Positions 8,343 through 12,010 of a stretch of 64,000 bases of DNA are shown here, piece by piece. Every line of letters starts with the position of its first letter. Position 1 is the first letter of the stretch. This DNA comes from Epithemia pelagica (Eukaryota; Protista; Bacillariophyta). The stretch spans positions 2,294,001 through 2,358,000 of the forward strand of contig OX337234.1 of the NCBI GenBank assembly GCA_946965045.2, written 5' to 3'. Position numbers and translations under genes: made by a program. The notes under the pieces are model-generated. The model was not told where the DNA came from, ran no database searches, and saw only the letters and a list, made by a program, of their open reading frames with translations.

Positions 8343-9586
8343 TTAGCGTTCACAGTTCATTTCTCTATCGGAGCTTGTATCCGCACAGAAGAATCTATCT
8401 CTTCCTTCGTCATCATATAATACACGAACTGCACCACCGACAACGATAGTACTTGGAGGCTTGACTTTATACTGGTCAGCCAATTCTGCAATATTCGACA
8501 TTTCACCCACAACTGTGCGTTGATTGGGACACCCTGCCCGCTCCACAATCGCCACTGGTGTGTCAGATGGATACCCTGCCAGTGACATCAATCGTTGGGA
8601 GAGTTCCTTCAACCGTCCCACGGCCATTAAGAAGACAATTGTTTGTTCCTTAAAGAGGGGTAAGTAGTAGTATCAGCATTTTCTCTCCAACGGATTATCA
8701 ACTAACCTTGTGATACTTGATCAGATCGGGTGATGTGCCGTCCCGACCGTACCCGGTGCACATGACAACCTGATTCGAGACACCTCTATGGGTGACTGGT
8801 ATGTTACCCAAGAGAGGTGCGGAGAATGCTGCCGATACGCCCTACCCAGAGCAGAGAACAAAGAAAAGAGTATTCAGAGCTTCTGCAACAGGAGCAATTG
8901 AGGAAACGATGTGTTTCTGTCTGTAGACCTACCGGTATGACAGTGGGTTCCACCCCGAATTCTCGAAACTTTAAGACTTCTTCTCCCCCTCTACCAAACA
9001 CAAAAGGATCACCAATTTTAAGTCGAATGACATGACGTCCTTGATTCAGCCCTTGATAGCACCACCAATAAATTTCTTCTTGGGCCAAATCGGCACATCC
9101 AGGAAGCTTTCGGGCCACCTTGATTTCAGGTGCCTCTATCAGATCCAATATTTCTTGTGAGACAAGGCGATCGACAACAACCAATGCATTTTCTTTCGTA
9201 GCGGTGTCGGTCAAAAGGCGATAAGCCGACACTGTTAACAGGTTTGGATCACCTGGGCCGGATCCAAGTAAGGTGATCTTTCCACCATTCGGCAGCTGGT
9301 TGGGAAGAGGCCGCTCCCTCGATTCACTGAGAGGTGGAAGGTCTGAACTTAAAGGCACGCCCCACTCGTTTTCTTCCACGGAGGATTTTAATTTTGCCCA
9401 TTGTCGACTATCTGCTCTCGACCAGAAAAATGATGTTTCATGGACAGGTCTTCTTGAAAGCTCAGGCCGCACGGAGCTCTTTCTGCGACACAAGAAGCTT
9501 GTCAATGCTCCAACTGGCGAGATAGATGCCAATAGGAGCAGTATAACTCGATTGAATCTGCATATCCACCGTATCTTGAGAGTCAT
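8343..9586 (-). CDS. UPM1: Uroporphyrinogen-III C-methyltransferase (siroheme synthesis); exons 9586-8933, 8841-8707, 8648-8343
   Basis: LLGSGPGDPNLLTV, RLKIGDPFVFGRGGEE, spliced IPGVSAAFSAP..IPVTHRG, FLMAVGRL, PVAIVERAGCP. Confidence 0.9.
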
Positions 9587-10029
9587 GGTGGGATGGATTC
9601 TTTTGGGCACAGACCTGTTCGGCTTTTTCTTGGCTTTTTTTTTTTGGCTTCAGCCAACCAAGAAAAGAACGCCTGGTGTGGGTCTGAAGCAGAACGAACA
9701 GATGGTCACGGCGCCCTGTAGTCTTGTCTCACATTTTAGTCGCTTGTGAATTCATCAAAGTTGGTCGCATTTGTAATCTCACAAAGCACCCCCATAGTTT
9801 TGTGGTTGCTATAGTAGACAGGGTAGTACTTGTTCCTTCTCTAATTCATCTCGAAGCAGACTACTGGGTTGTTGTGGGTTTCTTGGCCTCACTGATCCGT
9901 CTCAAGCAAGCAATGTCGATTAGATGAAGTCATCGGACTTGGCAGTGAAAAGGAAATGATGGAGAGGAAAACATCATTTAACTCAAGCTATGAATACTCC
10001 TATTCTGCAGGTTTCCAGAATAATTGAAT

Positions 10030-12010
10030 TTAGTATACCTCGACGTGCCACTGCTTCTTGGATTTCAACCCCTTCAACCAATCATCAAAGACAAGGCCCT
10101 TCTTTTCCGCAACTGCCTTCAACATGTCCAAGATTCCAGGCATCATTCCCTTCAGACCGCAAAAGTAAATATGAGCTCCATTCTCAAGTTTCTCGAAAAC
10201 TTCATCAGCATATTCTTCAACCTTGTCCTGAATGTACATCTTTCCACCCTTCGAATTGGTCTGTTCTCGCGAAAGCGCATAATCAAGTCGGAACTGCTCA
10301 GGATACTTTTCCTTGACTTCTTGCCACTCATCGTCGTAAAGGAGAGCATCAGAGTTAGCTACACCAAGGAACAACCATGCTTGTCCCTTGTAGGCTTCAG
10401 CGGCAGGAGTCTGTTCGACAAAAAGACGTCGAATGAAACCACGGTACGGCGCGATTCCTGTACCAGTGGCAACCATGATGTAATCAGTTTTGGGGTCCTC
10501 TTCAGGCAAAAGCATGACTTTTCCGGCGGGTCCCGTCATTACGACATCATCTCCAGGTTGGGTGTCACAGAGGAAATTGGAACAGATTCCCTTCTTGGCA
10601 GGGTCTTCTGCCTGCATTTCCGGGTCCCAGTACGTTGCGCGACGTACACAAAGGGATCCCGTCTTTCCAGACATATCGTCACCATACCGGGAGGACGCAA
10701 TCGAATAGAGACGAACAGAATGCGGCTTCCCATCTTTTTCGCGAACACCAGGAGGAATCACACCCCATGACTGACCCTCCCAATAAGGGAAGTCTCCTTT
10801 GTGGTCAATGATAATGTGGCACGTTTCCCCAGTCGCTTTGGGACCGACAATGCGCTTAGTGGACACAATCTTGCCTGTGAACGGTGCTTTGTTTTTGTAA
10901 ACATTTACAGGAACTGACGATTGATCCCAGTACGGATCGGCTTCCAAGAAATCTTGCTTCTTTTTTCCTTTGAAGAATTCAAGGCCGGTGAGGACAAACA
11001 GAGCAGCCAATGCAATAAGCCCTCCTTTACGACCCGCTAGAGTAATCGCGGACACAATGCCACCAGCAGCCACGACACCCGCAAAAATGGACGACAGAGC
11101 AACAAGAGTGGGCATTCCAAGTAGAAAGGCCCCCATGGCCCCCGTCCAAGCACCGGTTCCTGGAAGAGGGATTCCGACAAAAGCGGCAAGGGATGCCCAC
11201 TGACGTTCAAGTGATCCGATTCCCAAGTCCTTGGTCTTCTTCTCGGCTCGAGTCAAGATCGGGGACATGAGCTTTTTCAGGCTCTCATTGCGAAGCAACA
11301 GGAGAATGGGAAGGATGGGGGCCATGTTACCGAGTACACAAATGGGCAAAACAGTTGACAAAGGGAGTCCCATCCAAATACCTACTGGTACAGCTCCACG
11401 AAGCTCAACAACAGGAAGAGCTGAAATGATGGCCAACACACCCAAATCTGGGATACCAAAAGATCGAAAGAAGTTGGCAATCTTTTGACCAGTATGCAAT
11501 GTCTCTGGTACAGCTGCTGCCTTTCGAGCAGCGTGGGCTGCAGGGACGGTAGTCAGCTGAACAAGAAGCAAGGCCGCGACTCCCATAAGAGCTCTTGACG
11601 TGACCTGATCCACATGTAAGAGAAAATGTGAACAAATTTATTGACACTATGGTTTCTCAGTAGCTACGAGCTCGCAAAAACATACCTTTTTGAGCATCGA
11701 GCGTTTGGGGGTGGTGGCAATAGAGCTGTCGACGCTGCTAGGCATGGCAGCCCTTTCACCAAGAGAAACCACATTTTGAATCTTTGGTTGGAACGGAAAA
11801 GGCGACTTCGGGAGTGCTCGAGTCAAACTGAGTATATAATATGTGGGAGCGACGAACCAACAGCAACGTCGAGTGTGAGATGACACCTTTTCAATGGTTG
11901 GAGTTGAAAGCCAGCTATGACATCACCAACCTTGGAATACTGAAAGCATTTGATGACACGGCGCAGAGTGCAACAAGTGCACCCGAGAAGAGTCTCCCGA
12001 AAGAAACCAT
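10030..12010 (-). CDS. Plastid-targeted fusion: COG2426/small multi-drug export-like membrane domain + ferredoxin-NADP+ reductase; exons 12010-11931, 11827-11686, 11604-10030
   Basis: Exon 1 [22 protein letters not shown]|FSIP (signal + F). Membrane domain with VVELRGAVP and [17 protein letters not shown] motifs [33 protein letters not shown] and terminal EVY, all in one open frame. Confidence 0.88.

Follow-up and report, generated by a model that had tools for sequence, protein, structure and literature searches.

How is a ferredoxin-NADP+ reductase (FNR) held at a membrane in diatoms, and what does it mean when the enzyme is encoded in one open frame with an integral membrane protein? This question is raised by a gene on the minus strand, at positions 12010..10030, of a 64,000-nucleotide stretch of the diatom Epithemia pelagica (contig OX337234.1, positions 2,294,001 to 2,358,000 of the forward strand; hereafter the window, in whose coordinates positions are given unless stated otherwise). 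The location of FNR, stromal vs. membrane-bound, bears on NADPH production vs. cyclic flow and has been a long-running question, and diatoms account for much of the photosynthesis in the oceans. We think it fairly probable that the gene encodes an FNR fixed permanently to the stromal face of a plastid membrane, probably that of the thylakoid, through a membrane protein that also retains its own function.

The gene model, read from the sequence and its list of open reading frames, comprises three exons and 598 codons, and the elements named in the original prediction are all present: three exons, a signal peptide ending NA/F (the slash marks the cleavage point), a transit-like region and a segment ending AHA/A (Table 1). 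The membrane module, the linker and the FNR all lie within exon 3, where no stop, start context or splice signal is found between the membrane domain and the FNR, and KGKKKQ leads straight into the complete enzyme, as the predicted in-frame fusion had it. The open reading frame at 11915..12010 terminates within intron 1. The exons were translated separately, and the searches and folding described here used exon 3 or parts of it.

Transcript evidence comes from run X6, which derives from the same organism and behaves as an RNA assembly. A single unbroken X6 contig (record 12) runs over 9878..11606, that is, the 3' untranslated region and the whole of exon 3 with both domains. A joint at 11602->11684 (cut +2) skips the 81 bases of intron 2 at a depth of 164, with contigs retaining this intron reaching a depth of only 4-9, and record 18 matches as far as 11829 and then carries on with the sequence of exon 1, so exon 2 is joined to exon 1. 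Both introns are thus removed in X6 contigs at the predicted places. No split is seen in the transcript across 10940-11000, the domain junction at which the original prediction had allowed for one, and the misassembly it had also considered is countered by two DNA contigs, X3 (probably the source assembly) and X5 (another allele), that are continuous there. The fusion is expressed as one mRNA; contigs alone cannot prove one single molecule, but nothing points to a mechanism by which a single open frame, contained in one exon and lacking an internal start, could give a split product. In Epithemia clementina, the orthologue (P0002, 606 aa) is 89% identical over exon 3 and collinear from the first Met, with the same N-terminus as exon 1 and an exon-2 counterpart ending in APKRGILSKV.

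As an aside on these assemblies, runs X4, X5 and X6 differ from the window at approximately 0.5-1% of positions over 9864-11977 with no indels in the coding region, and a 1729-base RNA contig shows 12 differences, which looks like allelic or strain variation.

Table 1. Features of the fused FNR gene, in window coordinates.
Feature	Position	Strand	Basis or remarks
Exon 1	11931..12010	-	Start codon at 12010; endoplasmic reticulum (ER)-type signal peptide; ends in split codon AG/T (Ser)
Intron 1	11828..11930	-	103 nt, GT..AG; in-frame stop if retained
Exon 2	11686..11827	-	Ser/Pro/Thr-rich, transit-peptide-like; basic end TPKRSMLKK
Intron 2	11605..11685	-	81 nt, GTATG..CAG
Exon 3	10030..11604	-	524 codons plus stop; one open frame
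h0, hydrophobic segment ending AxA (AHA/A)	11530..11586	-	Orthologue leaders, alignment
PF06695/DedA-type core	11035..11502	-	Pfam, AlphaFold2 model, alignment
GRKGG turn and fifth hydrophobic helix	10972..11034	-	AlphaFold2 helix break at G191; homologues
Linker KGKKKQ	10954..10971	-	Alignment A1, columns 365-408
Complete plant-type FNR (DFLEADPYW...VEVY)	10033..10953	-	NCBIfam, PDB sequence alignment, motifs
Stop codon	10030..10032	-	Sequence and open reading frame list
3' untranslated region	9878..10029	-	Minimum extent; limit of X6 RNA contig

The enzyme at the C-terminus has every part expected of an FNR. The Pfam domain PF00175 (FNR NAD-binding domain) is matched in exon 3 with an E-value of 3.8e-26, and NCBIfam NF045929 (PetH-type FNR) matches the last 299 residues with an E-value of 8e-110, at a score below the equivalog cut-off, which is set for the cyanobacterial three-domain PetH. 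The comparison to solved plant FNRs covers residues 12-306 of 306 with 453 bits (E 5e-135). The motifs RLYSIAS (FAD), GTGIAP (NADP), SRE and CGLKGM and the C-terminal VEVY are invariant in 34 orthologues, and the S-R-E and K/Y site for the 2'-phosphate, the catalytic Cys and Glu and the C-terminal Tyr are present and align with the solved enzyme; the FNR is predicted to be catalytically intact. As for the CpcD domain of cyanobacterial FNR, no Pfam match to it was found, and NF058510 was matched only at profile positions 110-405.

For the membrane part, which the original prediction had likened to COG2426, the family tested was Pfam PF06695 (Sm_multidrug_ex), placed in the literature in the DedA superfamily with TMEM41B and VMP1. 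Exon 3 matches the profile over its full length (positions 1-121/121) with an E-value of 2.6e-29 and 102.7 bits, against a cut-off of 30.7. The core consists of amphipathic helix 1 (AH1), re-entrant loop 1 (RL1, carrying ELRGAVP), a transmembrane (TM) helix, a basic amphipathic helix 2, re-entrant loop 2 and a second TM helix. An AlphaFold2 (AF2) model of the module, built with 60 diverse homologues, has a predicted local distance difference test score (pLDDT) of 88 and a predicted template modeling score (pTM) of 0.80, and gives the AH-RL-TM arrangement twice (H38-47, H53-62/H67-77, H82-104; H107-127, H132-144/H152-161, H166-190), followed by a break at G191 and the fifth helix. We infer the re-entrance of the loops from published models. 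Stand-alone homologues from bacteria and algae also have this fifth helix, with a basic tail after it.

Is this module a mere anchor? All 13 of the residues that are invariant among 60 diverse family members are kept (P64, E67, L68, R69, P73, G92, N93, F142, P146, P148, T150, G151 and G176), and the ELR/P and PLPGTGAW loops are invariant. Among 34 fused orthologues, the mean pairwise identity is 75.5% for the core and 85% for its RL2-TM4 part, the same value as for the FNR (85%), compared to 40% for h0, 55% for the fifth helix (TM5) and 37% for the linker. A genome-wide profile scan of the 60.5-Mb genome finds one PF06695 locus, namely this gene. The fact that this is the only such locus, that its invariant residues are kept, and that the core drifts far less than h0, TM5 and the linker argues that the module has kept a function apart from anchoring. 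Judged from this conservation, it most likely still does whatever transporter- or scramblase-like job the family has. A Foldseek search of the module model against the PDB returned no match at E <= 0.001, and the module sequence gave only chance matches to PDB chains. No conserved Cys/His cluster or cofactor motif was seen in the core among the 34 orthologues and 60 family members.

The leader is consistent with delivery of the protein to the plastid. Read by eye, the putative exon-1 signal peptide ends in SSNA with Phe at +1 (FSIP), a candidate for the ASAFAP-type pattern of diatom plastid import, and a Ser/Pro/Thr/Lys-rich stretch follows it; orthologues have equivalents of both. This bipartite presequence of ER signal peptide and transit peptide would take the protein into the plastid. 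The second hydrophobic segment, h0, was described in the original prediction as resembling a thylakoid signal, and this stood only in part. It does have the layout of a Sec/thylakoid-lumen-type signal, with a basic n-region, a hydrophobic core and AxA at -3/-1; an AxA ending (AHA, ANA, ALA, AFA or ASA) is found in 6/6 orthologue leaders examined, and the -1 Ala is invariant in 34/34 aligned sequences. The segment is however native to PF06695 proteins and not specific to the thylakoid: h0 also occurs in stand-alone algal homologues, where it likewise ends in AxA, and in bacterial homologues its equivalent is an N-terminal Sec-type signal peptide, one of which ends AHA/G. It thus appears to be the native signal peptide or first TM helix of PF06695 proteins rather than a creation of the fusion. 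As the family's own element, h0 supports an N-out orientation and does not discriminate the thylakoid from the inner envelope.

The orientation of the module determines on which side of the membrane the enzyme would sit. Bacterial homologues have a basic C-terminal tail after the fifth helix, and these tails together with the Sec-type signals indicate that the core has its N-terminus outside and that the C-terminus lies inside. The AH2 loop contains 8 Lys/Arg residues and the linker 4, compared to 4 and 2 in the loops that we assign to the lumenal side. For TMEM41B, a layout of four TM helices and two re-entrant loops with both termini inside has been shown biochemically, and the AF2 module model agrees with published DedA topology models (PMC7818093). 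In the topology that we propose, h0 would run from in to out, re-entrant loop 1 would be lumenal and the next helix would return from out to in; the basic loop and re-entrant loop 2 would be stromal, the following helix would run from in to out and the fifth helix from out to in, so that the linker and FNR would end up in the stroma. Homology and modeling together thus suggest that the C-terminal FNR lies on the stromal face. The linker is basic and poorly conserved, with 6 to approximately 45 residues in orthologues (up to approximately 40 extra, mostly acidic), and falls in a region with pLDDT <50 (residues 213-238) in the AF2 model of the whole exon-3 protein. Its variable length and poor conservation fit a flexible tether. 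A short, flexible, basic linker would present the complete FNR on the stromal surface, and the enzyme would be permanently at the membrane, most likely that of the thylakoid, where photosystem I reduces ferredoxin.

The fusion is not peculiar to Epithemia. A word search with the exon-3 protein gave 2461 relatives, and the best 120 of these all carry both PF06695 and PF00175. Fused proteins occur in pennate diatoms (Seminavis, Fistulifera, Nitzschia inconspicua and Pseudo-nitzschia), in centric diatoms (Chaetoceros, Ditylum, Leptocylindrus, Dactyliosolen and Corethron) and in the bolidophyte Triparma strigata; several of the fused MMETSP transcripts are marked complete. An ESM Atlas cluster holds 54 fused proteins, mostly from Bacillariophyta. 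A search with the module only, over 1.84 billion representatives, returned one fused cluster and many other matches of 200-330 residues with leaders of approximately 100 residues; a 590-residue metagenomic protein resembling that of Triparma is fused. The named stand-alone proteins come from the raphidophyte Fibrocapsa, the brown alga Choristocarpus, the dictyochophyte Octactis, the dinoflagellate Symbiodinium and the red alga Galdieria.

Within the diatoms, the module word search also finds stand-alone proteins. In the Thalassiosirales (Skeletonema, Thalassiosira exigua, Cyclostephanos, Cyclotella, Detonula and Conticribra) they have 296-314 residues, several come from complete transcripts, and they end soon after the fifth helix with an acidic tail. 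The non-photosynthetic Nitzschia sp. Nitz4 has a stand-alone PF06695 protein of 338 residues (P0462), which together with the Thalassiosirales proteins P0402, P0426, P0398, P0455 and P0418 is 72-78% identical to the window's module. We accept these as real because of the complete transcripts or genome annotations and the consistent acidic tail. Two further apparent stand-alone diatom proteins, P0226 and P0227, were rejected as fragments, since their contigs barely exceed the open reading frames and P0226 ends in the first FNR residues.

In a tree of the module, bolidophytes and diatoms are united in one clade (99/95). The Nitz4 protein is nested there among fused proteins, those of N. inconspicua and Pseudo-nitzschia (98/97), and the Thalassiosirales proteins fall within an unresolved diatom group. 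The position of Nitz4 shows that the FNR part was lost there secondarily, and the same probably happened in Thalassiosirales. In the simplest history, the red lineage would have had a plastid PF06695 protein on its own, to which FNR would have been joined in the ancestor shared by bolidophytes and diatoms; many diatoms, Epithemia pelagica included, would have retained the fusion, and Nitz4, as well as probably the Thalassiosirales, would have lost the FNR part. Nitz4 shows that the module is kept without photosynthesis.

The reading of this protein as a covalently membrane-anchored FNR isoform, put forward in the original prediction, gains support from the single exon and transcript, the conserved fusion and the topology, and also from a soluble paralogue with a catalytic domain 91% identical to that of the fused protein. 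This paralogue is one of two further FNR genes in the genome and lies on contig 8 (about 2714537-2715750 of that contig, G000:C8; L002:1498-2711). Its exon 1 encodes MKIAALSFCVASAAA/FAPSGKPAFG, and after its one intron exon 2 starts with TSMSAKQDFLEAEPYW; with an ASAFAP-type presequence and no membrane segment, it is predicted to be a soluble plastid FNR. The other gene, on contig 16 (about 747054-747905, G000:C16; L003:892-2355), is FNR-like and 52% identical, in a 487-residue open frame with a long N-terminal extension that has no Pfam domain.

Other diatoms have a further class of FNR with 385-460 aa, made up of a presequence, an h0/AxA leader, a short loop (AKKAVEVVE...), one Gly/Ala-rich helix, KKQDFLEA and the FNR. 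Its members include P0164 (Nitzschia inconspicua), P0189 and P0190 (Chaetoceros tenuissimus), P0223 (Seminavis), P0165, P0159 and many metagenomic relatives, and none was found in the E. pelagica genome. Within one species, the leader of the single-helix protein aligns with the h0 of the fusion (E 0.011) and its helix and linker align with TM5 and the linker of the fusion (E 7e-8). Since h0 and the fifth helix are native to stand-alone PF06695 proteins, such an FNR amounts to a copy of the fusion minus the core, and the class is best read as derived from the fusion by core loss. That these FNRs kept h0 and one helix suggests that membrane anchoring is itself under selection.

In a tree of the FNR domain, the paralogues group by species in Chaetoceros tenuissimus, Pseudo-nitzschia and Seminavis, with no such grouping in Nitzschia inconspicua or E. 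pelagica. The grouping suggests gene conversion or recent duplication. In C. tenuissimus (P0031, P0189 and P0190), the FNR domains of the fused protein and of one single-helix protein are identical, and the third is nearly so. We considered whether these identical domains could be alternative first exons of one gene; there is no other FNR within 10 kb of the fused C. tenuissimus gene, which rules this out.

Several points weigh against a stromal FNR anchored at the thylakoid. The signal peptide and cleavage sites were assigned by eye. The AF2 model of the whole exon-3 protein has only a moderate pLDDT of 68.8 and is silent on the packing of the two modules. The best-scoring structures for the FNR domain are 3lo8 and 1jb9, at 453 bits, which we take to be maize root-type FNRs, followed by leaf FNR at 304 bits and cyanobacterial FNR at approximately 290 bits; the domain thus appears closest to the plant root type, and the direction of electron flow is not readable from sequence. 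Thalassiosirales and Nitz4 do without the fused FNR, which makes the fusion dispensable and means that the module can do its job independently of photosynthetic electron flow. Among the proteins listed in a study of plastid solute transporters (PMC2246286) is At2g02590, the PF06695 homologue of Arabidopsis. No localization, fractionation or activity data on the fusion protein were found in the searchable literature.

The At2g02590 listing makes residence in the inner envelope possible, and this leads to one of the alternatives, namely the same architecture and stromal orientation at the plastid inner envelope instead of the thylakoid, like the Tic62-bound FNR of plants. It is in keeping with h0/AxA being a general Sec-type signal of the family, but the layout of the single-helix FNRs, with a leader like a cleavable signal, one helix and a stromal domain, resembles that of small thylakoid proteins and the main FNR substrate is made at photosystem I. 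Neither of the latter points is decisive, and we regard an envelope location as unlikely.

A second alternative, to which we give a similarly small chance, is that the two halves are functionally coupled, in line with the redox-coupled transporter or sensor that the original prediction had named as its other option. Here the PF06695 module would handle a membrane substrate (such as a quinone, polyprenyl lipid or ion) whose transport or redox state would be driven or gated by electrons from the FNR, and the protein would be a ferredoxin/NADPH-linked membrane oxidoreductase or a redox-regulated transporter. Proteins that are joined in one lineage but not in others often work together, and the fusion in bolidophytes and most diatoms follows such a pattern; moreover, the core is about as conserved as the enzyme, and its re-entrant-loop architecture is typical of transporters (PMC7818093). 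However, the PF06695 family is common in non-photosynthetic anaerobes, and the 80 bacterial and archaeal loci among the matches listed show no FNR-like gene up to 5 kb from PF06695, nor does a redox gene stand out among their recurrent neighbors, which were identified by eye. The core lacks any visible cofactor motif, as noted above, and a linker of variable length and poor conservation suits a tether over a fixed electron-transfer interface. The derived FNRs dropped the core and kept the helix, and Nitz4 lost the FNR and kept the module. The specific proposal that an FNR wired to a DedA-type module passes or senses ferredoxin/NADPH reducing power for plastoquinone or a polyprenyl lipid seems to us quite improbable.

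The 80 prokaryotic loci (L009-L088) come from gut Clostridia, WOR-3, Cloacimonadota and Thermoplasmata, with no phototrophs and no cyanobacteria among them. Their recurrent neighbors by eye are a UvrA-like gene (in approximately a quarter of the loci), a small membrane open reading frame and a RecD-like helicase. These neighborhoods, mostly of related Clostridia, yield no functional clue.

It could also be that the protein is a polyprotein-like precursor, fused for co-expression or co-import, the linker of which is cleaved to give a soluble FNR and a separate membrane protein. The exposed, basic and unstructured linker would allow this, and FNR has been found among the soluble proteins of T. 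pseudonana (PMC5299434), though in that order the genes are separate. Yet the linker contains no conserved cleavage motif and varies from 6 to approximately 45 residues, a dedicated soluble FNR gene is already in the genome, and the derived isoforms hold a membrane helix directly before the FNR, all of which makes cleavage highly improbable. That two adjacent genes or a misassembly have been read as one is refuted by the uninterrupted exon-3 frame, the RNA contig spanning the domains, the two independent DNA assemblies and the recurrence of the same fusion in many species and complete transcripts.

Beside the gene, an open frame at 8804-9610 (minus strand) matches the first half only of the tetrapyrrole methylase profile PF00590 (E 1.7e-16) and probably represents a single exon of a gene that resembles those for uroporphyrinogen-III methyltransferase and has a plastid-type leader.

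A stromal FNR anchored by a peptide bond can be compared to the systems known to hold FNR elsewhere. Cyanobacterial long and short FNR isoforms both come from a single petH gene. The long form, FNR-L, is PetH with an N-terminal CpcD-like domain, and resembles the diatom protein in that a covalent N-terminal extension fixes the FNR and a short soluble isoform coexists with it; the isoforms of E. pelagica are, in contrast, encoded by separate genes on different chromosomes, and the extension is an integral membrane protein with re-entrant loops rather than a soluble phycobilisome-linker domain. In plants, FNR is bound by Tic62 and TROL at the stromal side of thylakoid or envelope membranes, and TROL is an integral membrane protein. 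Their binding is non-covalent, pH-dependent and dynamic, via a Ser/Pro-rich motif (PMC10604066, PMC5723097), whereas the diatom link is a peptide bond and the membrane part belongs to an unrelated family. A covalent anchor would do what Tic62/TROL (non-covalently) and CpcD do elsewhere. Diatoms would use neither known tether in its plant or cyanobacterial form; there is no CpcD on the E. pelagica FNR, and Tic62/TROL homologues were not searched for.

Compared with its own family, the module has the Pfam match, the invariant loops, the AH-RL-TM inverted repeat and the extra C-terminal helix in common with PF06695/DedA proteins, and differs in its fusion, since the bacterial, archaeal, plant and other algal members examined are stand-alone proteins of approximately 150-330 residues. 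With the single-helix diatom FNRs it shares the catalytic domain, the h0/AxA leader and a helix and linker homologous to TM5 and its linker; in these the whole PF06695 core is missing, and E. pelagica has a soluble paralogue instead.

We found no description of the fusion in the searchable full-text literature, which is provisional as subscription-only papers fall outside its coverage. A C-terminal enzyme fusion is absent from two papers on the PF06695/DedA family; one of them is PMC7818093, and the other counts a protein of Thalassiosira oceanica among the PF06695 members and never mentions ferredoxin. Databases name the fused proteins simply "ferredoxin-NADP+ reductase." The architecture is already visible in precomputed Pfam annotations, and it is the recognition and context that are new, not the sequences.

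The finding draws attention to PF06695, a widespread plastid and prokaryotic membrane family without known function that is retained even in a non-photosynthetic diatom. If the two halves were indeed functionally coupled, the protein would be a candidate ferredoxin/NADPH-plastoquinone link in cyclic electron flow and would provide the first functional handle on the family. For the diatoms, it means that many of them appear to hard-wire FNR to an integral membrane protein, beside soluble and/or single-helix copies, and that some lineages have split the fusion again. The diatoms thus offer a natural series for the study of FNR attachment, with the full anchor, the helix only, no anchor, and the anchor without the enzyme.

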